This document shows positions 122 to 48,698 of a stretch of 64,000 nucleotides of DNA, piece by piece. A program made the translations under genes and the position numbers. The DNA is taken from positions 1 through 64,000 of IMG/VR virus record IMGVR_UViG_3300025141_000016. One strand, written 5' to 3'. Numbering within the stretch: position 1 is the stretch's first letter; every line of letters starts with the position of its first letter. Below the pieces are notes generated by a model. That model did no database searches, had not been told where the DNA came from, and saw only the letters and a program-made list of their open reading frames with translations.

Positions 122-2050
122 ATGAGCCTTGCTGACCTCGCTGCCGCCGTAGGACGGCGCTCTGTTGACGAAGCGGTTGATGAGAGCGTGGACATAATCA
201 CCTTCATCGAGTCCCAATGGGGACTCGGACTACGGTTGTTTCCCGTCCAGCGTGTGATCTTGAAGGCGCATTATGGGATGCCCCTCGATGACAATGCCGA
301 GGGTTTCCCCCTTGATGGGCCTGTTCCTACGGACCACCCATCTTTTCCTACGGCCTCTTTGGATGAAGACGGGTGCTACCTCTACCGTATCGTTGTTGCC
401 GACTTTCGCCGCGATAACCCACAATACATGACGGAGGCTGGGTATCTCCGGCACTTGTTTGACGAGGGGCGCTGCAACATCCGTGAAGTGGTTGCGGGGG
501 AGCAACGACGGGAGATGGTGCTCTCCGTGGGCCGCCGCTCGGGCAAGACTCTGATCACGTCGTGCATCGTGGCCTACGAGAACTACCGGTTGCTTCTGAA
601 AGGCAACCCCCAGCGGTACTACGGCTCGTCACAGTCGAACGTGATCCAGTTGATCTCGGTTGCAACGGACAAGGACCAAGCGGGGCTCCTTTACCAAGAG
701 GCTGCGGGACACTTCACCAAGTGCGATTTCTTCCGACCTTACATGGCGAACGCCACCCAGTCGTTTGCCACGTTTCAAACGCCCTTTGACATTGACCGGT
801 ATGGTTCCTATGCGGACAACCCCAAAGCCCGGTACAGCCTCAAGGTGACCTTCCGGTCTTGCGTGGCCAAGGGGCTCCGAGGTGGGGCCAACATTCTTGT
901 GGCATTGGATGAGGTGGCTCACTTCGGGGAGAAAGGTCAGGCCAGTGCCGATGAGGTCTACCAAGCCGTTGAGCCGAGCACCCGTACTTTCAGTCCCAAA
1001 GACCCCGCCAACCTCACCCGTCCTACCGGGGAGAACGAGGGTCGAATCATCTTGATCTCATCCCCTCTCGGGAAGCAGGGGCTTTTCTACAAGCAGTTCC
1101 GGCTTGGCTTTGGGAACAACAAGGCTGCCGACAACCTGCTGTGTATCCAAGCGCCGACATGGGAGGTCAACCCGACAGTGCCCGCCGAGACGTTTGTTGC
1201 CTCTTACCTCAAAGATCCCAACGTCTTTTTCACGGAATACGGAGCAGAGTTCACGGACAGGACGCGGGGGTGGATTCCAGATGCGGCGGATCTGCTGGCA
1301 TGTGTGGACCCTACTGCTCGCCCCAGGCTGCGAGGGCCGACCCGTGCTCCTCACTTCATGGGGCTCGACGTGGCTCTGGTGGGTGACTACACCGCTGTAG
1401 CCATTGGCCACAACGAGCCATCGGGTGAGGTGGTCCTCGATCACATTGAGCGGATCCGGGCCGGAGAGGGTGACTTCGTAGGCCAGGAACGTCTGGAGTT
1501 TGATGACGTGGCGGATTGGGTCTACGACTTGTCCCGGCGCTACTACATCACGGATGGGATCTTTGACCAGTGGGCCGGGATCCCGATGGAACAGGCGTTG
1601 AGGAAGCGGGGGCTCTCGACGCTGAAATCGGTTCACCACACTCGGCAGTTATCGAGCCAAATGTTCCAGAACTTCAAGGACATGATGTTTGACAAGAGAC
1701 TGGTCCTCTACAACTGGCCTTTGCCGGAGGGGGAGGACCACTGTGCCTACCTCGCGGAACTGCTTGAACTCCAGGCAGACCACATCAGCAAGTACATCGT
1801 GAAGGTCGAGGCCCCCAACATCGAGGGCAAACACGATGACTTTTCGGATGCCCTTGTTCGGATGGTGTGGAGTGCCACGACCAACTCGACCAAGGTGGTG
1901 AGGATGGTGGGGTCCAAACGGTATAGTGGAGAATCTGTTGCGGTTTCTCGTTTTGGTCGGAAGGCCACGGCACTCAAAGGTCGGAGTGGTTCTCATCCTT
2001 CACGCATGATCCCCAAGGGGGGCCGGGGTTCCGGGGGCACTGGTCGGTAG
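122..2050 (+). CDS. terL: Terminase large subunit
   Basis: Walker A VLSVGRRSGKT, Walker B VALDEVAH, coupling motif ISSP, and RNase H-like nuclease acidic motifs MGLDVA, IFDQW and HDDFSDALV. Lies two genes upstream of the portal. Confidence 0.95.
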   Translation: MSLADLAAAVGRRSVDEAVDESVDIITFIESQWGLGLRLFPVQRVILKAHYGMPLDDNAEGFPLDGPVPTDHPSFPTASLDEDGCYLYRIVVADFRRDNPQYMTEAGYLRHLFDEGRCNIREVVAGEQRREMVLSVGRRSGKTLITSCIVAYENYRLLLKGNPQRYYGSSQSNVIQLISVATDKDQAGLLYQEAAGHFTKCDFFRPYMANATQSFATFQTPFDIDRYGSYADNPKARYSLKVTFRSCVAKGLRGGANILVALDEVAHFGEKGQASADEVYQAVEPSTRTFSPKDPANLTRPTGENEGRIILISSPLGKQGLFYKQFRLGFGNNKAADNLLCIQAPTWEVNPTVPAETFVASYLKDPNVFFTEYGAEFTDRTRGWIPDAADLLACVDPTARPRLRGPTRAPHFMGLDVALVGDYTAVAIGHNEPSGEVVLDHIERIRAGEGDFVGQERLEFDDVADWVYDLSRRYYITDGIFDQWAGIPMEQALRKRGLSTLKSVHHTRQLSSQMFQNFKDMMFDKRLVLYNWPLPEGEDHCAYLAELLELQADHISKYIVKVEAPNIEGKHDDFSDALVRMVWSATTNSTKVVRMVGSKRYSGESVAVSRFGRKATALKGRSGSHPSRMIPKGGRGSGGTGR

Positions 2051-2672: not shown

Positions 2673-2996
2673 TTGAGTCGATACCGCTCCAGTAATGCCC
2701 CCACGGATACTGACCGTCAGATCCAGGCTCTCCTCGACCGCGCCTCCCGCTCGGTAGGGGAGGCGATCCGTCTGGCTTCTTCGGCTCCTGTGGCGGCTGG
2801 TCGTGGGAAACGTCGGGTGTCAGGGGACTTGGAGCGGGCGATGGCAGCCCTCCAGACGGTTCGATATATCGGAGCATCCCCCACAGGCCGCGATGAAATG
2901 AGCGAAGTCGAACTCAATCGCCTCCATCGGGAGCGCCTGTCGAATGAAAGGGCCGAGCGTCGTGCAGCGGTGAAGGAGCAGATCGATGTCGGATAA
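2673..2996 (+). CDS. Hypothetical protein (head cluster)
   Basis: 107-aa ORF with RBS GAGG, overlapping the portal start. Contains an IRLAS motif. Confidence 0.6.
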   Translation: MSRYRSSNAPTDTDRQIQALLDRASRSVGEAIRLASSAPVAAGRGKRRVSGDLERAMAALQTVRYIGASPTGRDEMSEVELNRLHRERLSNERAERRAAVKEQIDVG

Positions 2997-4707
2997 AACG
3001 ACCTCCGGTGACGGTGTTCCTGTTCGCAAGGTCAAGTCTGGCGACGGGAAGCGGAAAGCGAAGACGGGCAAGCCCCGTCGCGTCACTTCCTCCATGATGA
3101 GAGCCCACAATCGCACAGCCAGCTTCTCGTCAAGCATGGGGAACTCCGAGGCTGTTGAAGGGTTTGGCGGCAACTTCTACTCCCCAGAACTATCTACGGA
3201 CTTCTTGGAGTTGCCGCAGAGTCTCCATGAGCAGTGGAACTACTACCGGTTTTTCTACCGGAATGAGCCTTTCGTTGGTCAGGCGGTGGACCTCCACACG
3301 GAACTGCCGATCAGCAAGGTCAGGATCGGGATGGCTCACGCCAAGAATCGTGAGATCGCGACTGCCGCTACCCGTTTTTGCGAGCGTTGGGCGAAGCGCA
3401 TCCATCTCCTCGACAGGCTGTTGGCTATCACCCATGACCGCAACCTCATCGGAGAGGTCTTCGTCTGGTGTGAGGATGCCAATGGGGAGATGCCCCGAGA
3501 GATCCGTGAAGAGGAGCGCCGGACACTGACCGAAGACGGGGAAGTCAATGAGGAGTGGGTTGAGTACGATGACGCAGATGAACGCGCCGTCAAGTGGCTC
3601 AAAAAGAACTACAAGGGGTGGACGAACATGCGTGTTCTGCCCCCCGAACAAGTCCAGATGCAGAGTTTCAACTTCACTGATGAGCGCATCTTTGAACTGA
3701 TCCCTGACAGCAAGACGAAGGACATTGTTGAGAAAGCCCGGATGGGGGACAAAGAAGCTAAACGCATCGTGGAGTCGATGCCTCCCGAGGTCGTCCAGGC
3801 GGTCACGGCGGGAGAGAACATCCCTCTCAACACTGACCCCATGGCAGGGTCATTCATTCATTACGTCGCCAACCGCAAGTCAGACTACGACCCCCGAGGC
3901 CGTTCCATTTTGGAACGCTGTATGCGTGCTCTGGTCTACCGGGACAAGCTGCGGCAGGCGCAGACCAGCATCGCTTCCCGGCACATGACCCCGATTCGGA
4001 TCGTGTCTGGGGATGACCTTGACATAGCGGATGTGGAAGCCTTGCGGGAGCAGGTAGACAACGCTCTGCAAGACCCCGACTACTCGATCATCGCGAACTT
4101 TGAGGTCAGGTGGGAAGAGATGGGTGCTGATCAGCGTCTACTCGATCTCTCGTCCGAATATGACCTCACTGACCGTCAGTTGTACGCTGGGCTCGGTGTG
4201 ACCGAGGGGCTTCTCTCTGGTGAGAGTGCCTACGCCGGGGACCGGATCAACCTTGAAGTCATCAACACGCGGTACATGCTGCTCCGTGAACAACTCCAAG
4301 ACCTCGTTGAAAACTACTTTTTCAAGCCGATGTGTGCTCGCATGGGTTTCGTGGAGGAGGACGAGGACGGAGAGGAGCGCGTGATTGTTCCCACCTTGTC
4401 GTTCACTCGACTGGCCCTGCGGGACAATCGGGACACGTTCGATGCCCTCTACAATCTCTACACCAAGGGCAGCTTGGACGTGGACACCATCTTGGAACTG
4501 CTCAACCTTGACCCCATCGCGGTCAGGGAGCGCATCGAGCGTGACCTGTTCACCGTCAATGACCCCACGTTCAATGAAGTGCTCCGAGGTGTCTACGGAG
4601 ATGCAGGTCGGGCTATCGCGGAGAACTCCAATGCAGCCGAGAAGATTGCCAAGGTGCTTGGCTTGAAGTTTGAGAAGCCCGCCGAGGAAGAGGGCGGCAG
4701 GTTCTAA
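2986..4707 (+). CDS. Portal protein
   Basis: 573 aa, downstream of TerL. Portal-like segments RFFYRNEPFVGQAVDLHTELPIS, YDPRGRSILERC and REQLQDLVENYFFKP. Confidence 0.85.
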   Translation: MSDKTTSGDGVPVRKVKSGDGKRKAKTGKPRRVTSSMMRAHNRTASFSSSMGNSEAVEGFGGNFYSPELSTDFLELPQSLHEQWNYYRFFYRNEPFVGQAVDLHTELPISKVRIGMAHAKNREIATAATRFCERWAKRIHLLDRLLAITHDRNLIGEVFVWCEDANGEMPREIREEERRTLTEDGEVNEEWVEYDDADERAVKWLKKNYKGWTNMRVLPPEQVQMQSFNFTDERIFELIPDSKTKDIVEKARMGDKEAKRIVESMPPEVVQAVTAGENIPLNTDPMAGSFIHYVANRKSDYDPRGRSILERCMRALVYRDKLRQAQTSIASRHMTPIRIVSGDDLDIADVEALREQVDNALQDPDYSIIANFEVRWEEMGADQRLLDLSSEYDLTDRQLYAGLGVTEGLLSGESAYAGDRINLEVINTRYMLLREQLQDLVENYFFKPMCARMGFVEEDEDGEERVIVPTLSFTRLALRDNRDTFDALYNLYTKGSLDVDTILELLNLDPIAVRERIERDLFTVNDPTFNEVLRGVYGDAGRAIAENSNAAEKIAKVLGLKFEKPAEEEGGRF

Positions 4708-4725: not shown

Positions 4726-4754
4726 TCCCGTGGTTGGGTGTGCCAAGACCAAAA

Positions 4755-4798
4755 AGGTCGAGGTCGAGGTCGAGGTCGAGGTCGAGGTCGAGGTCGAG
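4755..4798. repeat. Perfect hexanucleotide tandem repeat (AGGTCG)x7
   Basis: Read directly at 4755-4796 plus AG. Lies between a late-type promoter motif (4711) and the RBS AAGGAG (4803). Confidence 0.95.
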
Positions 4799-4817
4799 TA
4801 AGCAAGGAGATCCCACC

Positions 4818-5834
4818 ATGTCCAAAACCATTACCGCAACTGATCGCTCCCGCTTGATCCGGCTCGCATCCTCGATGCCTGCTGGATCTCCCAAGCGGAA
4901 GGCAATCCTCAATGCAATCGCAAGTACGGATCAAACGGATTTCCTCGACACGAGACTCGACCGGGCCTGGAAAAAGGCCCTGAAGTCGTATTTCGCATGG
5001 AAGCAGGATGGGGAAAAGACCGATTCCCGCCTCTACCAGCAGCTACGCCAAGACCCCACAAACGAGCGTGCCAACTCCACGATGCTGGAACTGCTTGCCC
5101 AATACCGAAAAGAGGGTGGGAAGCTGCTCAAAACTGTGAAAGCGATCTACGCTGCCGCAGAGGGCCACCCCATCAGCAAGCAGTCTGACTTCCGTCAGGG
5201 GAAGGGGAACTTGGACCATGCAGAGCATGGTCTCAAGTCCTTCACCCCCTCCAAGTACGACAACCCCGTGGACATGATGTACCACGGCTCGTATGGCTAC
5301 CAGATGTTGATGAGCGCAATCGAACACTTGGCCTACGCACGCCACAGTGAGGGCCTGAAGACTGCTTCTACGCGGACCCGAACTGCAAAGTACAACACGA
5401 AGCTGCGGGCGACGGACACGTTGTCAGAGGCCGCCATGTTGGGTGTGGCTGCCCCCATCCCCCGGAGGGGGTTGAAGACTGCTTCGACTGGTTGGGTCAC
5501 GGATTTGTTCACCGCGTGGCAGGACAAACGCATTGACAAGCACGACTTCTATACTGCTCTTTGGCCTTTCTGGAAAGACGGTCAGATCCGGCCTGCCGAG
5601 GTAGCTGCCCTTACCCTCGCTGCTGACTCCACCTTTGGTAAAGGAGTTCCTGCTGGCGTGGTCAAAATGCGGTTGGGGGACATTGAAAAGGGTTTTGATC
5701 TCGGTGAGGATGTGGATGCCATTATCCGACCCATAAGCCGCAACATCCTACGTCGTCTTGGGTTGAAGACTGCTTCTACGCGGACCCGAACTGCAAAGTA
5801 CAACACGAAGCTGCGGGCGACGGACAGGTTCTAA
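4818..5834 (+). CDS. Modular head-associated protein with GLKTAS linkers
   Basis: Start reassigned to ATG 4818 (RBS AAGGAG). N-terminal DRSRLIRLAS motif, three GLKTAS linkers and a duplicated KTASTRTRTAKYNTKLRATD. Confidence 0.75.
   Translation: MSKTITATDRSRLIRLASSMPAGSPKRKAILNAIASTDQTDFLDTRLDRAWKKALKSYFAWKQDGEKTDSRLYQQLRQDPTNERANSTMLELLAQYRKEGGKLLKTVKAIYAAAEGHPISKQSDFRQGKGNLDHAEHGLKSFTPSKYDNPVDMMYHGSYGYQMLMSAIEHLAYARHSEGLKTASTRTRTAKYNTKLRATDTLSEAAMLGVAAPIPRRGLKTASTGWVTDLFTAWQDKRIDKHDFYTALWPFWKDGQIRPAEVAALTLAADSTFGKGVPAGVVKMRLGDIEKGFDLGEDVDAIIRPISRNILRRLGLKTASTRTRTAKYNTKLRATDRF
5356..5826 (+). repeat. 63-bp exact direct repeat pair (5356-5418 and 5764-5826), plus a partial copy near 5469-5485
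   Basis: TGAAGACTGCTTCTACGCGGACCCGAACTGCAAAGTACAACACGAAGCTGCGGGCGACGGACA occurs twice, identical. Confidence 0.9.
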
Positions 5835-11562: not shown

Positions 11563-14280
11563 ATGCGGGGATCCCCGTCCCAAGTAGCGCGTCGATGGAT
11601 GCAGGCTCGTGTCGAGCCTCTGAACCCCGAGCAGGCCAAGAAGTTCCGTAAGGAAGTGCTCATGCTTGCGAAGGCGGCGGAACGTGCGTCTTCTTACGCT
11701 GATGTGGAGCAGATTGTCCCTGCGGTGGCGAAGTGGAGACAGGCGTTTGACTATTACAACGCCGCTATCCGCAAAGAGTTGGAGGCTCGTGTCCGAGAGG
11801 GTGAGAATCGGAACATCCCTGTCCCCGAGGGTGCGACCCGACCGGATGCAGGGTGGGCAAAATACTACATCGAAAATGCCAAGCCGGTCTGGGATCTCTC
11901 TTACGAGGTAGGTTCGTTGCCGAGCGTCCCCAAAGTCACGAATCGACACGGTGGCGCTTTTGAGGAGCCCGAGGTGGCTCGTGCTCGGATGGTTGAGTTC
12001 TGGCTGGGCCGGGGGGATTCTCAACAGGAGGCAGAGCGGAAAGTAGAGGATTACCTGTTGGGGTCGCCCTCGTGGACCCGAGAGGAAGCCGAACAGAAAG
12101 CGGTGGATCGGTGGAAGGGGGAATCCCGTAAGTGGGCCAACCGTGTGCGTCGGAAGGCCAGGAAGACTTGGGCTTTCTACGCGGATCTGGCCGCATGGGC
12201 ACAACGGTCTATGGGAGGGGCGCGGGAGATAGCGATTGCGGTCCCCGACGAGGAAGTCGTCTCCCTGGAAGGGTTCCGTGTCATCTTCCGGGGCTTTGCG
12301 GAGTCCCCCTACCAAGACAAACTCCCCGCTGTGAAGCACGGGTTGAAGATGTACCGGCAGTTGGCCCAGAAGCGAGCCCCCATCCTGCTGAAACGGCAGA
12401 CACCGATCTTCATCGAGTGGACGTTTGAGCCGACCACCTCATCCAGTGCGGGAGCCTACTACCTGGGGAGTAAGATATTCGTGACCCCATGGAAGATCGG
12501 CAAGGACATTGGTGACTTCGTGAAGACGATGGCTCACGAGATGGGCCACCACATTTTCAGGACTTACCTGTCGGGGGCTGCAAAAAAGGCGTGGACTGCG
12601 TTCATTCGGGGTGACTACAAGGAACTCGACCTCCGCGAAGCACTTGCCATCATGCAACGGGTGGGGGCAAGAACCATCGTTGGTGATGAGTTGGCCGAGG
12701 AAGACCCCATCCTCTACCTCCAGATGAACACCCTGATGCACGACTCCAGATTCAAGTACATGGACCTTTTCAGTGTTGAGGACATTCAAGAATACCTCAA
12801 TGCAGGGAAAGACCCTATGGTCGCCGTTCCCATCAATCCCATCACAGGGTACGCGGGGAAAAACCCCGAGGAGGCGTTCTGTGAGGCTTTGGGCCTGTTA
12901 GTGGCCTATGGGAAAAAGGCGGTCCTGGGTCCGGTTCGGATGATGCTCCGGGGTGTTCTGCCGGAAGTCCGCATAGCGTCCGAGAAGACCATGACCGAGC
13001 GGGTAGCCCAGCGTAAGCACGCTGAAATGACGGGTGAGGCTTCCGTCGCCTTGATGAAATGGCTCTCCAAGGTCACCCAACGGATAGGGGTGGCGCGACA
13101 CGTCTACGTCGTCGGGGGAGCCGTCAGGAACTTTCTGATCGACAAGCCCATCAAGGACATTGACATGGTGGTGGACTCCCTCTCCTTACGAGGGAACCGG
13201 GACGCTGCTTGGGTGGCAAAGGAGATTGCCCGCGCCATCCCTACCAGCACGGACATTGTGACTGACGCTCTGATGGTGTCCAAGGTGTTCATCCAGGGGG
13301 AGTGGGACTTGGATGGCCACCAGATGAAGGATGAGGTCATCGAGATCGTCAACGCCCGAGCCGAGATTTACGAGCAGGACGAGGAGGGCAACTACCTGGG
13401 ACACAAGCCCGTCCGAGTTGACCCCACGACCTTGGAAATCGACGCAACTCGACGGGAGTTCACTTTCAACACCCTCATGTGGTCGTTGCTCTCGTTGGCC
13501 GATGGCCCGGAAAAGGCTGAAATCATTGACCTTACAGGGTGTGGAGTGCGGGATTTGGAGGCTCGCGAGATGCGTTGCCCCCAGGATCCCGACAAGACCT
13601 TCACGGAAGACCCCACACGGATCATCCGCACCATCAAGTTTGCGTTCAAGTACGGCTTCAAGCTGCCCCCGGACGTGAAGGCAGCGGCTACCCGGCAGGC
13701 TCGGGGACTGAAGCGAATCCCCTCAAAGGCGTGGGGAGCCCTTCGCGACATTGTGCTGGAGAACCCCCAGTACAAAAAGGCTCTGGGAGTCATGGATGAC
13801 CTCGGGGTCATTGACGTGCTCGCTGACATGGTGCGCGACGACCAGCAGTTCGCCACCACCCTGCTCAACTACTCCCAGAAGCGGGGAGTGGCGTTCATGT
13901 TTGACCTCATGGACCTTGGGATTCCTGTGGGTGCGCCCATGGGATTCATGGACTCTGCCCAACAACGCCAGTTCCGAGCGTTGTCTGTGGACATGGACCG
14001 AGATGAGGCCCTCCACTACCTTGAAGCCATCAAGAACCCAGGGGTGGCGTACAAAGATAAGAAGTTCGTGCCTTCCCTGGCCAGGGAGTACGGGGTGGAC
14101 CCGAAGAAGATGCGGGATTTCATGCCCGTGGTCACCCAGATTGGCAGGGATCTTCTTCTCGATGACCCCGAACTTCTGCACGATGCCCCTCGGCTGAAGC
14201 GAATGGTGAGGCGAGATTTGGGGTCCGCAAACGTGAGGGTGGCCTCGGAGTGGTTGCCGACTACTCGGGGAGGGTTTTGA
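11563..14280 (+). CDS. Multi-module protein: unknown domain + zincin (HExxH) + class II tRNA nucleotidyltransferase (CCA/PAP family)
   Basis: Zincin AHEMGHH...PEEAFCEAL. Nucleotidyltransferase motifs VYVVGGAVRN..DIDMVV, RAEIY..KP loop, DATRREFTFN and FTEDPTRIIRTIKF. Confidence 0.85.
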   Translation: MRGSPSQVARRWMQARVEPLNPEQAKKFRKEVLMLAKAAERASSYADVEQIVPAVAKWRQAFDYYNAAIRKELEARVREGENRNIPVPEGATRPDAGWAKYYIENAKPVWDLSYEVGSLPSVPKVTNRHGGAFEEPEVARARMVEFWLGRGDSQQEAERKVEDYLLGSPSWTREEAEQKAVDRWKGESRKWANRVRRKARKTWAFYADLAAWAQRSMGGAREIAIAVPDEEVVSLEGFRVIFRGFAESPYQDKLPAVKHGLKMYRQLAQKRAPILLKRQTPIFIEWTFEPTTSSSAGAYYLGSKIFVTPWKIGKDIGDFVKTMAHEMGHHIFRTYLSGAAKKAWTAFIRGDYKELDLREALAIMQRVGARTIVGDELAEEDPILYLQMNTLMHDSRFKYMDLFSVEDIQEYLNAGKDPMVAVPINPITGYAGKNPEEAFCEALGLLVAYGKKAVLGPVRMMLRGVLPEVRIASEKTMTERVAQRKHAEMTGEASVALMKWLSKVTQRIGVARHVYVVGGAVRNFLIDKPIKDIDMVVDSLSLRGNRDAAWVAKEIARAIPTSTDIVTDALMVSKVFIQGEWDLDGHQMKDEVIEIVNARAEIYEQDEEGNYLGHKPVRVDPTTLEIDATRREFTFNTLMWSLLSLADGPEKAEIIDLTGCGVRDLEAREMRCPQDPDKTFTEDPTRIIRTIKFAFKYGFKLPPDVKAAATRQARGLKRIPSKAWGALRDIVLENPQYKKALGVMDDLGVIDVLADMVRDDQQFATTLLNYSQKRGVAFMFDLMDLGIPVGAPMGFMDSAQQRQFRALSVDMDRDEALHYLEAIKNPGVAYKDKKFVPSLAREYGVDPKKMRDFMPVVTQIGRDLLLDDPELLHDAPRLKRMVRRDLGSANVRVASEWLPTTRGGF

Positions 14281-14815: not shown

Positions 14816-17800
14816 ATGCGCCCGAAGGTGGCCAAATCCTACAACCGCATAGCGATGTACGACTTCGACGGAACCTTGTTCCGAAGTTGGGAGGCTACAC
14901 CTGAATGGTGGGCCGGGTCATCCCTCGATACTGGTCCCTACTCGTTTTTCGTGCGCCACGAGTCTCTGGGTGAGCCCTGTGTTCCTGATTCCCCGGAATC
15001 CGATTACTGGATCACCAAGACGGTGGCAGCAGCCAAGAAGGACTCCTCCGACCGAAATGTCTTTGTGGTCGTAGTGACTGGGAGGGTTCGGACACACAAA
15101 CGGCGAGTATTGGAACTTCTCAAAAGCAAAGGGATCAATCCCGAGGCTTCCTACTTCAATCCAGGCATGTCGGCTGCCAAGTTCAAGGTGGCGGTCCTCC
15201 GCAACTTGTTGGCGGGCCACCGAATGGTCAGTGCGGTGGATGTGTGGGAGAACGAGAATCAGACGTACTACGAGAACGCCCTACGCCAAGCGGCAAAGAA
15301 ACTGGACCGTGAGATCACGGTGACGATCCACAGCATCCATGTGCCGCCCAAGCCTCTCGTGTGTGGTCCCCGCGATTTTGGGTTGTCGAAAGATGCCTCC
15401 GTCGGTCGGGTGGTGGCCAAGTATCAGGGGAAGAAAGAAGTCCCCACGGCTGATGGGAAGGGTACGTCTACGGTCTACGAGTACGGCCCCCGTCAAGTGG
15501 CCAAACGCCACAAGGAAAAGGCCAAGCGGATCGAATCCCTCCGGCAGAAGATGGCGGAACTGCGGCAACAGGCTCGGGGTGACCTCACGAGCAAAGACCC
15601 TCAAACGCGCCTCACGGCGTTGGCAGTCTGTCTCATGGATGAGACTTACGAGCGCGTGGGCAACGAGAAGTCTGCCGAGGAAGGTCACCATGGGGTCACC
15701 AACTGGACGGCAGGTCATGTCTCTCTCGGGGACAAGAGTGCCACCGTCAAGTACACCGGGAAGTCTGGGGTCAAGCAAGAGAAGACGGTCACCAACGCTC
15801 GGGTGTTGAAGGCCCTGCGGGAAGCCATGAAAGGCAAGGGTAAGGGCGACAAGATCCTGTGCGATGGGGATGAGTGCGACATTCTCGCCAAGGATGTGAA
15901 CGCCTACCTCAAACCATTCGGGGTCACCGCGAAGGACATTCGGGGGCTCCATGCCAACGAGGAGATGCGTCGTCGTCTTCAAGAGGTACGAAAGGGTGGT
16001 CCCGATCTCCCGGTCGCCCGGAAAGAAAAGGACAAGATCCTGAAGGCCGAGTTCCAGCAAGCCTTGAACGATGCTGCCAAAGCTGTTGGCCACGAAGCCA
16101 GCACCCTACGGAGGCAGTACCTTGTACCGACCATGGAGGAGACATTTATCCACGACGGCACCGTGATTGACCAGTTGGCCAAGAAAGCTGGGGGCAGCCG
16201 CATCCTCTACTACATCGGTAAGAACAAGGCACAGCCCAAGCCCAAGCGGGTCAACCACTGGAAGGACCGGGGGCAGCCCGAACCGGCTTGGGTGCGTCCG
16301 TGGCTCGATGCTCCGGTTCAAAATGCCGTGTTTCTCACCACCAATCCCTTCGGTGTGGCAACGAACCACGGGGTGGTGGGGCATGTCTATGCCTATGACG
16401 TTCCCCAGTGGGTGCTCAAAGAGGCCAAAGGGCTCCACCGCTATGATTGGGCTACCGAGGTCATCATCCCCGATGTGCTGTGGAAGCACGTCAAGTTTCG
16501 GGGCAAGTCGATGGACCGGCAGGAGTTCGACCAGATGATCAGGGAGGGCCAGAACGAGCGGTCCTTTGCCCAGTGGAATCGGAACATGGGATTGCGAGAG
16601 AAGCGCAAGCCAGAGTTGGTAGGACAGCCTGTTTGGGTCACCGCCACCAAGTCGGATGCGGAGAAAGAGGAGGAAGAAGACCAGAGGTTGATCCGGCAGA
16701 GCCCCAAGAAGAAGCCCCCTCGTCGGGATCTGGAACGGGGTCGTGTTGAGGACACACACGAGACGGATGCCGATGAGGACCAAGACCGGAAGGACCGCTC
16801 CCGCAACTTCAAGGACGCGGCTGCTTGGGTCGCCCTCCGGTATGCCGCTGGGGCTGCCGCAGCCGAGGCCGATGACGAAGGTAGTTCAGGCGGTGGGGTC
16901 AGCGGTAAGTTCCTCATGTTCTTGGAGGAAAAGGGTGGCGATCAGGTCACCAACCCGGACACCGGGAACAAGGTCAAACTCAAAAGTCTCAAAGGCCCGA
17001 AGGGGAAGGAGTTACAGAAGCGGGAGTTCCAGAAGTGGCTGGACTCCGAGAGCGACGGAGATGCCGGTGCCGAGCCCTCGGGACCGAAGCCGAAACCGAA
17101 GCCGAAACCGAAGCCGACAGGCCCCTCTGCCGATGCGAAACATGCAGAGTCCCTGGATAAAGTAGTGGGTGCCCAACAGAAGCGTGAAGATTTGGTCGCG
17201 GAGGGAGAGCCCTTTGATGTGGAGGCCATCAAGGCAACCATACGTGAGGAGTTCTCCGCGATCCCTGGGGTAGATCCCACCACGATCAAAAACACCCTGG
17301 GGTCTATGACGTTGGTCCCCCCCAAGGGATCCCACGACACTCCCGAGATGCTACTGGAGGCAGCGGTGGCGAGCCTCACCAAAGCCAACGGTGGGGCGGT
17401 CAAGGCTTTCGGCAAGAAGACCAAGATTGTCGAGAAGAAAGCATTGGAACAGGTCACGGAACTTGCGGGGGAAGCCGCCAAGGGGTTGAGCAAGTCCCTG
17501 ATGCCACATGACTTGCTCGCCGTCGCGGCTCACATGGAAGCGGCTAAAGACGAAGCGGTGGCAGAGATTCTGGATGGACGTGCCCGTAAGGATGCTCGGT
17601 CCAAGGCGCAGTTCGCGGATCGGGTGCTGGAAAGGATCGATGGTGACAACCCGCCCTCTCCCGAGGAGATCGCGGAAGCCCTGGTGGCGAAGCGGGCAGT
17701 CGGGGTGCTTGATGATCCCACGATGCTTTACCCCCACAAGCCCCTGACGAGTTTGAGCACCGAACCGTTGTCGTTCGATAACCCTGGGGCCGAGGCGGCC

Positions 17801-18583
17801 TACCGGGAGAAAATGACCGAGGTGGCTGTTGATGCCATGGACGCTTACCGAACCTTCACCCCGGAGGACCGTGAGACGCATCGCAAGGGGCTGGAAAAGC
17901 ACATCAAGAAAATGACGGAGGGAGGGGACACCGAGTCGGAACAGTACGCCCAAGCCATCTCCCAGATGCGGGGCATGGCGCTTGCGTCAGCCTTGGAAGA
18001 CGGGGACAAGGCCAAGGGGGTCAATCCCACGTTCCAAGCGTTGCTGGTAGGGGCTGACAATGCGGGACGAGTGGAGGAGTTTGCCAGGGTCAACCTTTCC
18101 GGTGCTGCGGAAGGGGATAGTAGTGCCCAGCAAGTATTCCGTGACGTGATGGAAGATACCTCCCATGAAGACATGGCGAAGATGCTTCCAGACGATCATC
18201 CGGCCCAATCTGCCTTGAAGTTGTTGACCGGCTGCCCGTCTGGCGCAGACCCCAACAGTCAGGGGTGCCGGGAACTGGCGAACCTCCCCCAAGATTCCAT
18301 CGACATGCTGAACACGATGGTCAACGATGCGGTGATGGGAGAGGTGCTGTTCACGGATCAAGCCCTGGTATCGGCAGACCCTAACGCCTCGGTCGGGTCC
18401 ATCAAGCAGAAGAAGAAGCAGACCAAGCAGACGGGCAAGGGGAAGTCTTTTGCGGACATGATGGCGGCTTTTCTTGCAAGCCTCAAAGCAGGTAAGAGTG
18501 CCGCGCAGTTGCCCACGGGGATATACGACTTTGATCCTTGGAGGGCATCTATTTCCGGGCAAAGGGATGAGTTCAGCCGGTAG
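14816..18583 (+). CDS. Multi-module protein: HAD phosphatase (RNA-repair SAK type) + DNA topoisomerase IB + ART-like module + acidic helical region
   Basis: HAD: MYDFDGTLFRS...VVVTGR. TopoIB: YERVGN, GKSG, DVNAYL..TAKDIR, VGH, RRQYL. ART-like: YYIG...AVFLT...EVIIP. Confidence 0.85.
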   Translation: MRPKVAKSYNRIAMYDFDGTLFRSWEATPEWWAGSSLDTGPYSFFVRHESLGEPCVPDSPESDYWITKTVAAAKKDSSDRNVFVVVVTGRVRTHKRRVLELLKSKGINPEASYFNPGMSAAKFKVAVLRNLLAGHRMVSAVDVWENENQTYYENALRQAAKKLDREITVTIHSIHVPPKPLVCGPRDFGLSKDASVGRVVAKYQGKKEVPTADGKGTSTVYEYGPRQVAKRHKEKAKRIESLRQKMAELRQQARGDLTSKDPQTRLTALAVCLMDETYERVGNEKSAEEGHHGVTNWTAGHVSLGDKSATVKYTGKSGVKQEKTVTNARVLKALREAMKGKGKGDKILCDGDECDILAKDVNAYLKPFGVTAKDIRGLHANEEMRRRLQEVRKGGPDLPVARKEKDKILKAEFQQALNDAAKAVGHEASTLRRQYLVPTMEETFIHDGTVIDQLAKKAGGSRILYYIGKNKAQPKPKRVNHWKDRGQPEPAWVRPWLDAPVQNAVFLTTNPFGVATNHGVVGHVYAYDVPQWVLKEAKGLHRYDWATEVIIPDVLWKHVKFRGKSMDRQEFDQMIREGQNERSFAQWNRNMGLREKRKPELVGQPVWVTATKSDAEKEEEEDQRLIRQSPKKKPPRRDLERGRVEDTHETDADEDQDRKDRSRNFKDAAAWVALRYAAGAAAAEADDEGSSGGGVSGKFLMFLEEKGGDQVTNPDTGNKVKLKSLKGPKGKELQKREFQKWLDSESDGDAGAEPSGPKPKPKPKPKPTGPSADAKHAESLDKVVGAQQKREDLVAEGEPFDVEAIKATIREEFSAIPGVDPTTIKNTLGSMTLVPPKGSHDTPEMLLEAAVASLTKANGGAVKAFGKKTKIVEKKALEQVTELAGEAAKGLSKSLMPHDLLAVAAHMEAAKDEAVAEILDGRARKDARSKAQFADRVLERIDGDNPPSPEEIAEALVAKRAVGVLDDPTMLYPHKPLTSLSTEPLSFDNPGAEAAYREKMTEVAVDAMDAYRTFTPEDRETHRKGLEKHIKKMTEGGDTESEQYAQAISQMRGMALASALEDGDKAKGVNPTFQALLVGADNAGRVEEFARVNLSGAAEGDSSAQQVFRDVMEDTSHEDMAKMLPDDHPAQSALKLLTGCPSGADPNSQGCRELANLPQDSIDMLNTMVNDAVMGEVLFTDQALVSADPNASVGSIKQKKKQTKQTGKGKSFADMMAAFLASLKAGKSAAQLPTGIYDFDPWRASISGQRDEFSR

Positions 18584-19075: not shown

Positions 19076-19609
19076 TTGCGCCGTAACGCCGTAAATAATG
19101 TCAACTGGCAGCAGCGAGCCCTCGCCTTTCAGGTTGGGGACGTTGTGGGGCCGTTTGGCCTATTCGATGCACAGTCGGGCCGCGTCACAGCGGTTTGGCC
19201 TGCCATCGGTATGGTTGATGTGGAGATGGCCTCGGGCAACAAGCGGTATCCAGTCGAAGACCTCCAGCGATTTGACAGTGAGGGTGATTCAGAACCCCCC
19301 TACACTGACTCTGCCCCAGGTGGGCAGCCCACAGTACAGGTGCCCGGTGGCCCCGTTGACAAGTCGGCGGCTCGGGTGGCATATGCCTATCGCAAGGCAA
19401 TCTACTGGGCTGACAAGGACCGACAGTACAGGGCCAACCGAGATGAAATGGCCTCGGGCCAGCCTGGATGCCCTCGTTGTGAAGAACAGCCCCATCTCCG
19501 ACGGGCAGTCTACAAGCGACGTGATGGCAGCAGTGAACGTCTCCTGGGATGCCCAGGTTGCATGTTCCTCATCAAGAGATCCGACATTATGAACCTTGGC
19601 GGCGAGTAA
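19076..19609 (+). CDS. SH3-like + zinc-ribbon head-cluster protein
   Basis: FQVGDVV..GRVTAVWP..VDVE; linker SAARVAYAYRKA; CPRC...CPGC. Confidence 0.65.
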   Translation: MRRNAVNNVNWQQRALAFQVGDVVGPFGLFDAQSGRVTAVWPAIGMVDVEMASGNKRYPVEDLQRFDSEGDSEPPYTDSAPGGQPTVQVPGGPVDKSAARVAYAYRKAIYWADKDRQYRANRDEMASGQPGCPRCEEQPHLRRAVYKRRDGSSERLLGCPGCMFLIKRSDIMNLGGE

Positions 19610-21045
19610 TGGCGTTCTTGAAGCAGGCGAAGGCAGTTGTCGTCCATCCTCGCATTAGCGGGCGTGTGTGGGGAGGTATCCGTAAGGCTGCTTCTGGTCC
19701 CACGCGGGATCTGACAGCCCAGGCTCGGGAGATTCTGGGTGAGGGCCTTCATTCGGACGACTATCTGGTCACCCACTGCACCATCGTTGCCTCGGTGGAT
19801 GTGGATGCGGTGCCTGGAGTTCGCCTGGGCAACGTCAAGATCGGTAGCGCCACGGTCAACAGGAAGTGGGACGACTACTACATCAAGCCCCAATGCTCCC
19901 AGTTCGTAAACAACAACGGTGACGCTTGGTCCCGGTCGGTGTTGCGGATGGCGTACCCCACGTTTATCGGGGGGCACAACTTCCAAGAGCACGTCCAGAT
20001 TGAGGAACAGAGCAAGGGTCGGATCATCGACGCTGTTGCTCGTGACATAGGGGATTCCCTCTATGTGGACATTCTGGTCGCCACCAGCCGCAAGCACGCC
20101 GCTCTGGTCCAAGACATTCAGTCTGGAAAGATGGCTACCCTGTCGATGGGTTGCACCACTGACTTCACCGTCTGTACCAAGTGCGGCCACTATGCCGTCG
20201 ATGAGACGCAGTTGTGTGAGCACGTTCGCTACGCCAAACTCAATACCTTCATGGATGAGGCTGGGCAGAAGCGGGTCATCGCGGAGTTGTGTGGACACCA
20301 GACCTACGACGAGAACCCTGATGCGCCCGGTGGGGTCAGATTCATTGAAGCCTCATGGGTTGCGGTGCCAGCGTTTGCTGGGGCAGTGATGCGGAACATC
20401 CTCGCTCCTGGCGAGGTGGTTGAAGCCGAAGTCCGTAAGGTCATGGCTTCACCTCCTACCGAGTGGTCTTCACAAGCTGTGGTCAAAGCCGCCAACCTTC
20501 GTGGTGTCCAAGCCTTTGAGTTTGGGGACGAGGAGGGTGAAGGAGAGGGTGAAGGAGGGGGAGAGCCCGCTGCCGATGACGCTGCTCCTTTCCAAGCGGC
20601 TGAAGACACCCTCTACAATGCTTTGAAAAGTCGGGTGGTTGAGCGTCTACAGCGAGAGATCGCACAAGAGAACGTGGAAGACGAGATGGGGTCCGAGGCC
20701 CCAATGGACCCCAACGACAACATCATCAAGGAAGGAGCAGCGCAGAACTATGCCGCATCCCTCCAGATGATGACCCGTGTCGCATCCAGCCCTATTGCCC
20801 TCATTGATGGGGTCGCCACGATCAACTCTTCCTACGGGATTCGGGTAGGTCGTGACGTATATCGAACCGCTTTGCGGGTAGGGGCTCATAGCCAATACCC
20901 TTCCCTTACCCATTTCCGACGAGCGTGCCGCAAGGTTGCTGGTCGCGATTTGTCCTCTGCCGAGATCCGGGTTGTTGTCCGGCTTGGCTCGCTGCTCTCA
21001 CGGTGGGAGCAACACAACAACCCTCCAACCACCCAATCTGAATAG
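19609..21045 (+). CDS. Prohead (maturation) protease, assemblin/HK97 fold with Zn-ribbon insert
   Basis: TAATG coupling. HNFQEH, SMGC..CTKCG..CEH and FIEASWVAVPAF. Lies directly upstream of the scaffold and MCP genes. Confidence 0.75.
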   Translation: MAFLKQAKAVVVHPRISGRVWGGIRKAASGPTRDLTAQAREILGEGLHSDDYLVTHCTIVASVDVDAVPGVRLGNVKIGSATVNRKWDDYYIKPQCSQFVNNNGDAWSRSVLRMAYPTFIGGHNFQEHVQIEEQSKGRIIDAVARDIGDSLYVDILVATSRKHAALVQDIQSGKMATLSMGCTTDFTVCTKCGHYAVDETQLCEHVRYAKLNTFMDEAGQKRVIAELCGHQTYDENPDAPGGVRFIEASWVAVPAFAGAVMRNILAPGEVVEAEVRKVMASPPTEWSSQAVVKAANLRGVQAFEFGDEEGEGEGEGGGEPAADDAAPFQAAEDTLYNALKSRVVERLQREIAQENVEDEMGSEAPMDPNDNIIKEGAAQNYAASLQMMTRVASSPIALIDGVATINSSYGIRVGRDVYRTALRVGAHSQYPSLTHFRRACRKVAGRDLSSAEIRVVVRLGSLLSRWEQHNNPPTTQSE

Positions 21046-23323: not shown

Positions 23324-23353
23324 TCAACCACCTTCCCACATTTGGAGACAATC

Positions 23354-24226
23354 ATGTCCGTATCGAACTCTGTGAAGGCCAAGCTGATCAGCGACTACAT
23401 TAGTACCGCCGCTGGTCGGGCCAAGTTGGCCGCCTCAATGACTCAACCCCTCCGGCTTCGCCGGGACTACCATAGTGTAGGTAGAAAGACCTTTTTGGTC
23501 GAGCAGTTGCCAGATGGCGCTCTGCCTATCTACGATAAAGACCCCGATGTTACGGCATTCGTGGTCGGTGAGGAAGGTGAGAACATCATCGCCGTCACCA
23601 AGCCCCGTCGTGTCATCTTCCCTCTCTTTGAGATCGCCTCCAACCCGGAGATCCCACTGACGCAGGTGAAGGAACGTCGCTTCGATCTCATCGAGCGGTC
23701 GCAGGACCTCGCTCGTGCCCAGATCCAGGCTGCTGAAGACGAGCGTGTCTTCGCCACCCTCGATGCTGTCGCTGCCAACGGCTTCGACTCGGTTGGTGCG
23801 GTCAACGCCGACACCGCCGTCGTCGCACCGATCAGTGGTGACGTGCTCGCGGATGCTTTCTCGCTCATCGAACGCCACGATCTGCGTGTTGCTCGCGTCT
23901 TTATGAACGCTCGCGACTACGCCGATCTGCGGAAGTTTGGCCGGGACATTCTCGACATCGAAACCCAGCGCGACCTGTTGAAGACTGGTCTGATGGCAAC
24001 CCTTTGGGGAGCCCAGATCATCGTCAGCCGCCTCGTGCCGGTCGGCACCGTGTACGTCTGCTGTGAGCCCGAGATGTTCGGTCGGATGCCTGTCCGTACC
24101 GAGTTGACGGTCCTCTCGGCTGACGATCCCAAGGCGCGGACCATCGGGTTCAGTTGCTTTGAGAACCTGGGCATCGGTTGTTTCAACCCGCGTGGCCTCG
24201 CTCGTCTGACTGTCACCCGTCCGTAG
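23354..24226 (+). CDS. Major capsid protein (HK97 fold)
   Basis: Start ATG 23354 (RBS GGAGA), about 290 aa. GRKTFLVEQLPDGALPIYDKD, FEIASNPEI, AQIQAAEDERVF and WGAQIIVS..VPVG. Followed by a strong terminator. Confidence 0.85.
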   Translation: MSVSNSVKAKLISDYISTAAGRAKLAASMTQPLRLRRDYHSVGRKTFLVEQLPDGALPIYDKDPDVTAFVVGEEGENIIAVTKPRRVIFPLFEIASNPEIPLTQVKERRFDLIERSQDLARAQIQAAEDERVFATLDAVAANGFDSVGAVNADTAVVAPISGDVLADAFSLIERHDLRVARVFMNARDYADLRKFGRDILDIETQRDLLKTGLMATLWGAQIIVSRLVPVGTVYVCCEPEMFGRMPVRTELTVLSADDPKARTIGFSCFENLGIGCFNPRGLARLTVTRP

Positions 24227-40493: not shown

Positions 40494-41689
40494 TGCCTGC
40501 ATCACCATGGTCTGCCGCTGTTCGCGCTAACGTCTTCCTGGCCCCCGGAGCCCAACGGGACGCTGCGTTCCGTCTACGGACGAGTCAACCCACCGATGTC
40601 TTTGCTGGTGACTGTGACCAGAGCCTCAACCTCCTCGTATTTGAGGATGTGCTCACAGGCGGTGGCACCACCTCTTACATCAGTGCCCAAGCTGGGGTCA
40701 GGATGCAGACGGCGGCTGCGGCGGGGGACAGGGTGGTTCGCCAATCCAGAGAGTATGTGCGCTATCTCCCCGGAAAGAGCCAGATGGTGATGGTTTCCGT
40801 TGACTTCCAGGGAAGCACGGCAAACGTGATCAAGAGGGCGGGCTACTTCGATGACAACTCCACTGGATACGGCGCGGGGATGTACTTCTATGTCGATGCA
40901 GGTGGGATCAAGACAGGCCACCGCGTAGGTGCATCGGACACCCTGGTAGATCAGGTCAACTGGAATGTGGACAAGTTGAACGGCGGTGGACCGTCTGGGG
41001 TCACGTTGGACACCACGAAACCACAAACGATGGTCTTCGTCTTCGGGGGGATGGTTCCCTCGGTGATGCGATGGGGTTTCATCCTCGATGGGAACATCGT
41101 TATTTGTCACGAGGAGTTCCAGACCAACACAGCCGCAGGCCCCCAGATGCCTCACCCCTCTCTCCCTGTCCGTTGGGAACTGGAGAGCACCGGGGGTGTT
41201 GGGGAGATGTTCGCTTTCTCGGCCTCGGTCCAATCCGAGGGGGGCTTTGACGACAAGGGACGCGCTTCGGGGCTGCCTCGCAACGCTCCTCTCTCATTGA
41301 CGGCGGTTGGGGTGAAGCCTCTCCTGTCAATCCGGCTGAAGACCTCGTTCAAGCGGGGACAAGTCCATCCTACTTCCCTCTCGGTCCTGGCCGATGGAAG
41401 CGAGAACTACTACTACCTGCTTCTCCTTCGGCCTACTCTGACGGGTGCCACTTTCGCGACTGGGGTGGACCATGTAGAGGGGGACATAGCGGCTACCGCT
41501 TATGGTGGCGGCCATATCGTTGGTAGTGGGTGGGGAGAGGCCGGGAAGGTTCTCAACGTGCCCCTCGACGGCATCCTACTGGGGGCTGATTATGCGGGAA
41601 CGACGGACATTCTGACCTTGGCGGTCAGCCCCGTTGGCACTTCCCCGACTGACTTCTATGCCGCGATCAACTGGCGGGAGTTCATCTGA
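40493..41689 (+). CDS. Virion structural protein (lectin-like)
   Basis: RQSREYVRYLPGKSQ..QxxWNVDKLNG. Translationally coupled within the tail operon. Confidence 0.65.
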   Translation: MPASPWSAAVRANVFLAPGAQRDAAFRLRTSQPTDVFAGDCDQSLNLLVFEDVLTGGGTTSYISAQAGVRMQTAAAAGDRVVRQSREYVRYLPGKSQMVMVSVDFQGSTANVIKRAGYFDDNSTGYGAGMYFYVDAGGIKTGHRVGASDTLVDQVNWNVDKLNGGGPSGVTLDTTKPQTMVFVFGGMVPSVMRWGFILDGNIVICHEEFQTNTAAGPQMPHPSLPVRWELESTGGVGEMFAFSASVQSEGGFDDKGRASGLPRNAPLSLTAVGVKPLLSIRLKTSFKRGQVHPTSLSVLADGSENYYYLLLLRPTLTGATFATGVDHVEGDIAATAYGGGHIVGSGWGEAGKVLNVPLDGILLGADYAGTTDILTLAVSPVGTSPTDFYAAINWREFI

Positions 41690-47636: not shown

Positions 47637-48698
47637 ATGGCATTGATTTGGTCCTGGGGAGTAGGCGAAGAATCCCCAACTTTGTTGGAGTCTATGGGCT
47701 TCGACTGTAGCAGCACGAGCACGAACAGTATTGAGCCGAGGCAGACCTATCAGTACAGGCCGTCTGGCGGTGCTGCTCGGTGGTCTTGGGCACTTGACCA
47801 CAACGCCTGGGTCACCCCTCCCGTTGGCGCGAAGCCTACCAATGCGATGGGGTGCCTAACCACTGCTTTTTTCGCGGAGCCGGGAACTGGTCCTTGGAAC
47901 AACACCACCTTATTGAACATATACGGGGGAAACAGCGGTAGGAACATCTATGTTCAGGTCACATCGGGAGGGGCGCTGAAGCTGTTTGTGGACAACACCT
48001 ACAAAGCTACTTCGACTTCGACGTGGCAGTGGAGTGGGCAGTGGCACCAAGTCACCCTGAAGTACGATATGAGTGCGGACCCGTGGAAGGGAAGCGTCTG
48101 GGTCGATGGCGTACAGGCCATCGCAGAGCAAACTGATGCGCGTGTTGCGGAACCCAGCGGGGCCACCATCTCCTTCACCATGGGCCAGGGTTTCGTCAAC
48201 GCGGACAGGGCAACCTACATCGGCCAGTGCATCATTTATGACAACTACACGGACCCGGCTGAAAATGTGCGCTTCGTGAGCCGCATCGCACCAGACACCG
48301 ACAGCAGCACGACCGGTACATGGGCCTCCACTGGTCCCAACAACCATTCGGTGCTGGGGTCAGACCCCTTTGACGCGGCTACCTACACCGAGAACTCGGG
48401 GCCTCCCTCTGCGGGAGATGATGTGATCACCACTTTCGCGGGAAACCTGGGAGTCGCCTTGGGCGGGGTGCCGCCATCGGTGGATGGGGTCACGGTTCAT
48501 TCGTTCAGCACAGGACTTGCCAACACGGCGAGAGCCGAGGTCGGAGATCAAGCAGGGGCCACAACGACTCCAGGGGTTACCAGCACCATGTCGAACACGA
48601 CCACCTACGCCACGGCCACGGCACCGACGAAGCCCAGCGGAGGGGCGTGGACCGCTACAGACACCCCGAAAGCGAAATATGAGATCATAAGTGTCTGA
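47637..48698 (+). CDS. ConA/LamG-like structural protein
   Basis: RBS AGGAGG. QWHQVTLKYD..VWVDG pattern. Confidence 0.65.
   Translation: MALIWSWGVGEESPTLLESMGFDCSSTSTNSIEPRQTYQYRPSGGAARWSWALDHNAWVTPPVGAKPTNAMGCLTTAFFAEPGTGPWNNTTLLNIYGGNSGRNIYVQVTSGGALKLFVDNTYKATSTSTWQWSGQWHQVTLKYDMSADPWKGSVWVDGVQAIAEQTDARVAEPSGATISFTMGQGFVNADRATYIGQCIIYDNYTDPAENVRFVSRIAPDTDSSTTGTWASTGPNNHSVLGSDPFDAATYTENSGPPSAGDDVITTFAGNLGVALGGVPPSVDGVTVHSFSTGLANTARAEVGDQAGATTTPGVTSTMSNTTTYATATAPTKPSGGAWTATDTPKAKYEIISV

Follow-up and report, generated by a model that had tools for sequence, protein, structure and literature searches.

A predicted type IB topoisomerase in a modular fusion protein encoded among the head genes of a putative phage-G-like huge phage

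Type IB topoisomerases (TopoIB) clamp duplex DNA, cut one strand through a tyrosine residue with formation of a 3'-phosphotyrosyl link, allow the helix to swivel and then rejoin the strand in an ATP-independent manner. To our knowledge, poxviruses are the only viruses in which TopoIB is known as a virion enzyme. The first 64 kb (hereafter the window) of the 297,104-base IMG/VR virus record IMGVR_UViG_3300025141_000016 raised the question of whether a phage could also carry such an enzyme in its virion, as a 1255-aa protein encoded there among head genes, P0001, contains a TopoIB module. A sequence-only reading of the window had described this module as an intact TopoIB within a head-cluster polyprotein, located behind a late-type promoter and possibly packaged for a use that would parallel that of the poxvirus enzyme. 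The analysis confirmed the 1255-aa open reading frame (ORF) and indicated that P0001 is a modular multi-enzyme fusion formed by a HAD phosphatase, a TopoIB, a probable ADP-ribosyltransferase (ART)-fold insert, a charged linker and a helical tail (Table 1). The topoisomerase is a member of a known family. What is new is its conserved linkage to the head module, its cassette-like fusions and the peptide tag that flanks it.

The topoisomerase module and the protein that carries it

The Pfam family Topoisom_I (PF01028) matched amino acids 230-430 of P0001 with an E-value of 2.9e-24 (86.1 bits, cut-off 23.7), and a genome-wide profile search returned the same match with 89.5 bits. When the module was compared with the PDB sequences using phmmer, the matches were the TopoIB proteins of Caldiarchaeum, human, Deinococcus and Leishmania. 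The Deinococcus (E 2.4e-17) and variola (E 4.3e-15) enzymes were also matched by a profile built from 11 relatives. Identity to the poxvirus and Deinococcus TopoIB is only about 18-20%, and the motifs ERVGN, GKSGV, KDIRG, VGH and QYL align in the profile-to-PDB alignment on the variola motifs that include the catalytic Arg, Lys, Arg, His and Tyr, with the same spacing of nine residues between His and Tyr in both proteins. The five catalytic residues named in the sequence-only reading (R280, K316, R376, H426 and Y435) were all found, and they are invariant in the 11 close relatives and in 53 diverse family members. The position that had been given for the module, 15390-16190, was a near-exact fit to the limits found here.

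An AlphaFold model of the module, built on an alignment of 53 sequences, had a predicted local distance difference test (pLDDT) value of 90.1 and a predicted template modeling (pTM) score of 0.83. A Foldseek search of the PDB with this model placed TopoIB proteins, variola, Deinococcus and human among them, at ranks 1 to 22, and tyrosine recombinases appeared from rank 23 on. The best match was variola TopoIB (E 5e-11, template modeling (TM) score 0.70), and the TM-score to the Deinococcus enzyme was 0.65. Taken by its sequence and predicted fold, the region comprising amino acids 198-458 is a small TopoIB of the poxvirus/bacterial type with an intact active site, and it is predicted to be catalytically competent. 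The N-terminal DNA-binding domain, about 80 amino acids long in the poxvirus and bacterial enzymes, is incomplete: the first residues covered by the profile-to-PDB alignment are 66 in variola and 73 in Deinococcus, the last hairpin (the T-V-Y-E-Y region) is all that remains, and in the model two short strands precede the helical domain. The fold, the catalytic motifs and the size of the catalytic domain are shared with the poxvirus and Deinococcus enzymes. In contrast to those enzymes, the window module is part of a 1255-aa fusion and has a lineage-specific tag on either side. No sign of the CCCTT-type site specificity of poxvirus TopoIB was seen for the window module.

The family includes at least 2000 metagenome proteins at E <= 1e-5. 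The TopoIB proteins of cultured jumbo phages (phrog_23460: Xanthomonas PhiXhv/Ep026 and Rhizobium RHph_N46) share the phage-encoded catalytic domain, but they are about 24-27% identical to the module, have 600-670 amino acids with a different N-terminal half, lack the tag and branch far from the window family. A nucleotide search of GenBank phages with the P0001 gene produced no match.

The domain that precedes the topoisomerase was identified as HAD_SAK_1 (E 1.3e-8, 35 bits, cut-off 25.6; searched as a fragment) and has an intact HAD motif I, D16-F-D-G-T20. The same region has a weak match to phrog_415, polynucleotide kinase/phosphatase. Pfam and PHROG searches detected no polynucleotide kinase or RNA ligase domain in P0001. 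Thus, compared with the Pnkp-type healing and sealing class, the protein has the healing phosphatase and lacks the kinase and ligase partners.

The insert that follows the topoisomerase behaves as a movable cassette: most relatives lack it, and in two related loci (loci are designated here by L numbers; L003 and L004) it lies N-terminal of the TopoIB. It has no Pfam match, and a search with the insert alone found a single stand-alone homologue, the 154-aa protein P0122. Residues R462, T508 and E548 are invariant, in a set of only four sequences. The Foldseek, VIA-align and Atlas lists consisted almost entirely of ART-fold proteins, including Tpt1, the diphtheria-toxin catalytic domain, ParT, MbcT, PARPs and DarT, and all these matches were weak (E >= 0.5, Z <= 6.0, TM < 0.5). 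An ADP-ribosyltransferase fold is thus probable, and the assignment is tentative because there is a single stand-alone homologue and the fold model is poor (pLDDT 60). The gene for the only stand-alone homologue of the insert (L016, 5408-5965) adjoins a gene with a weak match to tRNA_lig_CPD, a cyclic phosphodiesterase.

The C-terminal region, amino acids 801-1255, has no Pfam or PHROG family match. When amino acids 800-1255 were used as query only two proteins were matched, both of them TopoIB-bearing, and conservation is confined to the nearest relatives. The possibility that this tail is a general delivery or carrier domain was rejected because its homologues were found only in these two TopoIB proteins.

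The start of the ORF lies only 35 nt from the upstream stop codon. This gap includes a Shine-Dalgarno-like sequence, GGGTGAGGAG, 7-16 nt 5' of the ATG. No sigma-70-type promoter site was found upstream of the ORF, where the number of sites did not exceed that expected from shuffling. The late-type promoter that had been proposed could therefore not be sustained. Co-transcription with the head genes is a simpler reading than an own promoter.

Head-gene linkage and shuffling of fusion partners

The protein specified by the capsid gene of the window shares 83% identity with its counterpart in the 485-kb uncultured phage LR745208, 50% with that of Tunturiibacter phage Tunturi_5 (309 kb) and 41% with gp27 of Bacillus phage G. 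On the basis of these capsid identities the record is assigned to a phage-G-like huge phage; its CheckV completeness is 67%. The P0001 gene is part of a block of 18 co-directional genes that extends from 122 to 24226. As had been anticipated, the gene is flanked by terminase, portal, protease and major capsid protein genes, and the block also holds a scaffold-like gene and a decoration-like gene. The prohead protease is encoded 1 kb 3' of P0001. A search for paralogy among the head-block proteins of the window, which would be a sign of a shared targeting domain, found none.

The neighbourhood was compared across 17 loci, including the window, with TopoIB identities of 50-77%. The order terminase, portal, TopoIB protein, two small genes, protease, scaffold-like, decoration-like and capsid was found in L002, L007-L013, L015 and L022, and two partial loci match it over the part that they cover (the portal-to-protease stretch in L026, and the stretch between the TopoIB gene and the protease gene in L025). 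The TopoIB gene of L006 and L014 lies between terminase and portal, while the window, L003 and L004 have seven additional genes between portal and TopoIB. A maximum-likelihood tree was built with 20 TopoIB modules, a small, partly redundant and query-biased sample with very long outgroup branches. Head context was present on all deep branches of this tree, and the non-head loci L021, L023, L024 and L027 formed one nested clade with support 89/82. In the Rhizobium phage RHph_N46, a head maturation protease gene (phrog_18299, E 4e-56) is located directly upstream of a TopoIB about 24% identical to the module. The slot in Tunturi_5 equivalent to that of the TopoIB is annotated as a DNA ejection protein, and the phage G proteome paper is silent on the slot after the portal.

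A NUMOD3/GIY-YIG homing-endonuclease-like gene directly follows the stand-alone TopoIB in L022 (10861-11628), L023 (10852-11643) and L024 (10939-11646), which suggests that homing uses the TopoIB gene as a target or carries it as a passenger. Some relatives have terminase, portal and protease genes (Table 1) that are 400-850 aa longer than those of the window. Their window-like sequence is divided into two blocks, a pattern that inteins or other large insertions would be expected to leave.

The length of the TopoIB-bearing ORF ranges from 356 to 2094 aa across 14 loci and its partners vary. HAD_SAK_1 is the partner in the window and L002, PAP2 in L003 and L004, 2_5_RNA_ligase2 (a 2H phosphoesterase) in L007 and L013, and a PolyA_pol nucleotidyltransferase in L015, in L009 (by BLAST) and apparently in L026. 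The TopoIB proteins of L006 and L014 have no partner domain, and in L022 the modules are encoded separately, with the homing endonuclease gene between them. The TopoIB protein of L008 continues at its C-terminus into the product of the 155-aa gene. P0123, the nearest relative, shares 78-86% identity with P0001 and derives from an independent assembly. In this protein the N-terminal 491 residues of the neighbouring 905-aa protein are joined to the TopoIB at amino acid 193, and the sequence passes from amino acid 458 directly to amino acid 600, so that both the HAD domain and the insert are missing. The two halves of the 905-aa protein thus recombine independently with TopoIB, the PolyA_pol half in L009, L015 and apparently L026, and the N-terminal half in P0123. 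Fusions like that of P0001 were seen both in the P0123 assembly and in related IMG/VR contigs. Both borders of the TopoIB module, at the linkers named in the sequence-only reading, are true domain junctions because the relatives recombine exactly there.

These results are better described by the term modular fusion protein than by polyprotein. The multi-domain character of the earlier description stands, and the cleaved precursor that the word also implies was unsupported. Inspection by eye of the conserved linker for known prohead-protease motifs (L/I-x-E; S/A/G-x-E) found no convincing fit; P0001 may possibly be cut at its junctions.

A recurrent peptide tag

A short peptide recurs at the borders of the TopoIB module. 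Among 261 crude ORFs that cover the whole genome, the pattern [RQTW][VI][AVL][ASVRL][RKE][FWY] was counted 28 times, compared with 2.1 +/- 1.4 occurrences (maximum 6) expected after residue shuffling. A typical tag reads S-A-S-R-V-A-(A/S)-R-(Y/F/W)-A, and conservation extends outside the pattern, with Ser at -3 in 19 of 27 sites and Ala at +6 in 14 of 27. The tag is taken as a peptide signal and not a DNA signal because its codons vary synonymously. It is found at N-termini (residues 7-9), near C-termini and at internal domain borders. The relatives have the tag at equivalent places flanking TopoIB, and stand-alone TopoIB proteins of 283-309 aa have one copy at each end. Other tagged proteins of this genome (positions are those of the whole record) include one in L032 (128323-130137) with a weak NUDIX match and two with the Pfam domain ART-PolyVal, in L035 (195141-196478) and L036 (231505-235248). 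Related loci are enriched in the tag, and the loci of phage G, Tunturi_5 and the Xanthomonas and Rhizobium phages have no copy of it.

Our leading idea is that the tag would serve as a signal by which a guild of delivered enzymes is targeted, docked or processed. In its most extended form, which we consider unlikely, the tag would mark enzyme cassettes (TopoIB, ARTs, nucleotidyltransferase, phosphatases) for entry into the capsid, cleavage at their borders, or both, so that the virion would deliver a shuffled arsenal that includes the first bacteriophage virion TopoIB, acting on an incoming genome of at least 300 kb.

Table 1. Coordinates of the features described in the text. Positions refer to the window unless a locus is named.
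Feature	Position	Strand	Basis or remark
1255-aa multi-domain protein (P0001)	14816..18583	+	Uninterrupted ORF; ORF listing and translation
HAD-type phosphatase domain, aa ~10-185	14843..15370	+	Pfam HAD_SAK_1 and motif I
Type IB topoisomerase module, aa 198-458	15407..16189	+	Pfam, profile, model
R280 (ERVGN)	codon 15653-15655	+	Catalytic pentad
K316 (GKSG)	codon 15761-15763	+	Catalytic pentad
R376 (KDIRG)	codon 15941-15943	+	Catalytic pentad
H426 (VGH)	codon 16091-16093	+	Catalytic pentad
Y435 (QYL)	codon 16118-16120	+	Catalytic pentad
Insert domain of ~150 aa, aa 459-608	16190..16639	+	ART-fold matches, all weak
Charged 'post-Topo' linker, aa 609-680	16640..16855	+	Conserved; directly after TopoIB in relatives
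Low-complexity stretch with (PK)5 repeat, aa 681-800	16856..17215	+	Sequence
C-terminal region (helical tail), aa 801-1255	17216..18580	+	Without family match
First tag copy in P0001, R-V-V-A-K-Y, aa 198-203	15407..15424	+	HAD/TopoIB junction; low-confidence model tail
Second tag copy in P0001, W-V-A-L-R-Y, aa 671-676	16826-16843	+	End of post-Topo linker
Tagged window proteins	starts 9068, 11563, 14816, 28689, 30571; variants 14250, 32834		Tag pattern
Large terminase subunit	122..2050	+	Weak Pfam TerL_ATPase; 42-63% identity to the gene before the portal in all related loci
Portal protein	2986..4707	+	Weak Pfam Portal_Mu; E 2e-55 to phage G portal gp14
905-aa protein, PolyA_pol/CCA-type nucleotidyltransferase domain at aa 505-900	11563..14280	+	Head block
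Small conserved gene, 155 aa	18593..19060	+	Between TopoIB and protease genes
Small conserved gene, 177 aa	19076..19609	+	Between TopoIB and protease genes
Prohead (head maturation) protease	19549..21045	+	phrog_18299 E 1.3e-12; similar to phage G gp19 and Tunturi_5 gp331
Major capsid protein, HK97 fold, no delta domain	23342..24226	+	Identities; weak Pfam Phage_capsid
Lengthened terminase/portal/protease genes, L008	655-3837; 4368-7655		
Lengthened terminase/portal/protease genes, L009	3409-6708; 14916-17600		
Lengthened terminase/portal/protease gene, L003	13605-16400		
Lengthened terminase/portal/protease gene, L013	12655-16683		

Possible roles of the topoisomerase protein

We tentatively favour the view, for which the chances seem fair to us if somewhat short of even, that a modular protein bearing an active small TopoIB becomes part of the prohead and works on the phage genome at packaging, at entry or at both, with its partner enzymes co-delivered. 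P0001 would be loaded into the prohead as an internal protein and would possibly be cut at its junctions. Its TopoIB module would clamp duplex DNA, cut one strand through Tyr435 forming a 3'-phosphotyrosyl link, let the helix swivel and reseal the strand without ATP. The substrate would be the very long genome of the phage itself, during packaging and/or after ejection, and the variable partner enzymes would be delivered along with it, as in the case of polyvalent proteins and T4 Alt. We infer the enzymatic activity, the virion location, the cleavage and the timing of action from sequence, predicted structure and gene order.

Packaging of P0001 in the virion is plausible on the basis of its conserved linkage to the head module and its polyvalent-protein-like architecture. 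Like P0001, the polyvalent proteins described from phages and conjugative elements by Iyer et al. (2017; PMC5512222) have several unrelated enzyme domains per polypeptide in architectures that vary between relatives, are encoded beside head-morphogenesis genes, and include ART, 2H phosphoesterase and nucleotidyltransferase types. P0001 combines at least two unrelated enzyme domains, and the architecture varies among its relatives, both of which are features of that class. MuF, Zn-peptidase and ArdC-N anchor domains had no Pfam or PHROG match in P0001, in its parts or in nine relatives. TopoIB is not among the domains named in the text of the polyvalent-protein paper, in which injection is predicted too (PMC5512222). 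The T4 Alt and internal proteins and the ejection proteins of phiKZ and SPN3US are described as products of genes located with the head genes that enter the prohead, undergo trimming by the prohead protease and are injected together with the DNA (PMC13282480; PMC5694885), and phiKZ packages enzymes that get injected (PMC13282480). T4 Alt has an ART-fold domain, as P0001 probably does, but the targeting and cleavage motifs of the T4 and phiKZ type (L/I-x-E; S/A/G-x-E) differ from the window tag. We know of no TopoIB carried by the T4 Alt/internal-protein or phiKZ/SPN3US systems.

Several observations weigh against delivery in the virion. The family consists mostly of stand-alone proteins of 270-400 aa on contigs of up to 570 kb, and the members in L021, L023, L024 and L027 are encoded outside head modules, with RNase HII, DNA methylase and homing endonuclease genes as neighbours. 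TopoIB is missing from phage G and Tunturi_5, which are cultured relatives as judged by the capsid protein. The portal, scaffold-like and capsid proteins, which are classic protease substrates, have no tag, and neither does the protease. The N-terminus of P0001 runs directly into the HAD domain with no obvious targeting peptide. About 65 residues of the poxvirus N-terminal DNA-binding domain are missing, so the substrate preference may differ. Nothing seen here corresponds to the situation in poxviruses, where the enzyme supports early transcription by an RNA polymerase of the virion. In literature searches, TopoIB was not reported from any phage virion or set of ejection proteins, and no proteome of this phage lineage was found. 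Finally, no type IA or type II topoisomerase family match was detected in the 297 kb of the record, which is 67% complete, leaving TopoIB as the sole topoisomerase detected. A general intracellular role is possible because no other topoisomerase was found in the record.

This last point is one motive for considering P0001 a non-virion, cytoplasmic swivel for a genome of at least 300 kb, its place in the head operon being incidental or a product of mobile-element traffic. Such a role is somewhat unlikely in our opinion. It agrees with the family members located beside RNase HII and DNA methylases, with the GIY-YIG/NUMOD3 genes that follow several stand-alone TopoIB genes and suggest gene mobility, and with Iyer et al. 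(2021; PMC7824862), who placed the phage-specific TopoIB of phiRSL1, Lu11 and PaBG under DNA-topology functions. However, the head-module position was kept over deep branches and through several rearrangements, the TopoIB protein is fused to head neighbours (the product of the 155-aa gene in L008 and the PolyA_pol protein in L009 and L015), and the missing part of the record, which is about 67% complete, may hold other topoisomerases. A role as a helper of packaging at the portal or terminase, where the enzyme would remove twist or concatemer obstacles with no retention in the virion and no function after ejection, appears improbable. The gene does lie between terminase and portal in L006 and L014 and directly after the portal elsewhere, a torsional packaging model is discussed in PMC10893049, and the same source cites an impairment of packaging in T4 topoisomerase II mutants. 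Nevertheless, an interaction with terminase or portal is unsupported, the fusion to phosphatase, ART-like and nucleotidyltransferase modules would be left unexplained, and an enzyme that works in the cytoplasm would not require a gene within the head operon.

The nature of the partners led to another explanation, which we regard as quite unlikely, in which P0001 would be a machine for healing and repair of nucleic acid ends: the TopoIB would make or join breaks, and the phosphoesterases and the nucleotidyltransferase would process the ends. Cutting by TopoIB at ribonucleotides in DNA, or of RNA, would generate 2',3'-cyclic phosphate and 5'-OH ends, and the purpose would be ribonucleotide removal or the repair of tRNA cut by host defence nucleases. 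Work by Sekiguchi and Shuman from 1997 reportedly showed that vaccinia and human TopoIB cut at ribonucleotides producing a 2',3'-cyclic phosphate. All the identified partners (HAD_SAK_1, PAP2, 2_5_RNA_ligase2 and PolyA_pol) act on 3'-phosphate, cyclic-phosphate or RNA 3' ends; RNase HII is the neighbour of TopoIB in L023 and L024; the stand-alone homologue of the insert is encoded beside the weak tRNA_lig_CPD gene; and Tpt1 tops the Foldseek list of the insert, though not significantly. On the other hand, no polynucleotide kinase or RNA ligase domain was found in P0001, the 2H domains of polyvalent proteins have been argued not to serve ligase-type repair (PMC5512222), the same partners fit independent counter-defence enzymes equally well, and the position in the head module is left unexplained. 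Lastly, the module could be a catalytically silent clamp that only tethers the fusion protein to DNA, an idea in keeping with the truncation of the N-terminal DNA-binding domain relative to the poxvirus and bacterial enzymes. This is highly improbable because the catalytic pentad, together with many surrounding positions, is invariant in the 53 diverse sequences, as is expected only under selection for catalysis.

Phage TopoIB has so far been noted only as a sporadic DNA-topology gene, and here a large, phage-specific family is tied to the head genes in one huge-phage lineage. If packaged, as in the reading that we favour, the TopoIB protein would be a new class of co-injected phage enzyme and would provide a handle on the packing, ejection and readiness for expression of genomes of 300-500 kb. 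The tag is a concrete candidate for a targeting or processing signal and could permit prediction of the set of delivered proteins from sequence alone.

Some other features of the window and its relatives were recorded. A search of 185,579 species genomes for relatives of the TopoIB found only three matches (L025, L026 and L027), all of them on contigs binned into metagenome-assembled genomes (MAGs). Two of the three MAGs are labelled Actinomycetota, and phage head genes occur on two of the three contigs. Binning of phage contigs with their host is the probable explanation, and the labels are a weak hint of an actinobacterial host. The guanine-plus-cytosine content is about 59% across the whole window, and the standard genetic code suffices. 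A 366-aa protein encoded directly after the portal (4734-5834) begins with an (S-R) repeat, R-S-R-S-R-S..., and has no family match. Further downstream, a 1726-aa protein (41689-46869) has a right-handed beta-helix and a 1338-aa protein (48698-52714) has five Laminin_G_3 (ConA-like lectin) repeats; both are probably fibres or receptor-binding proteins.

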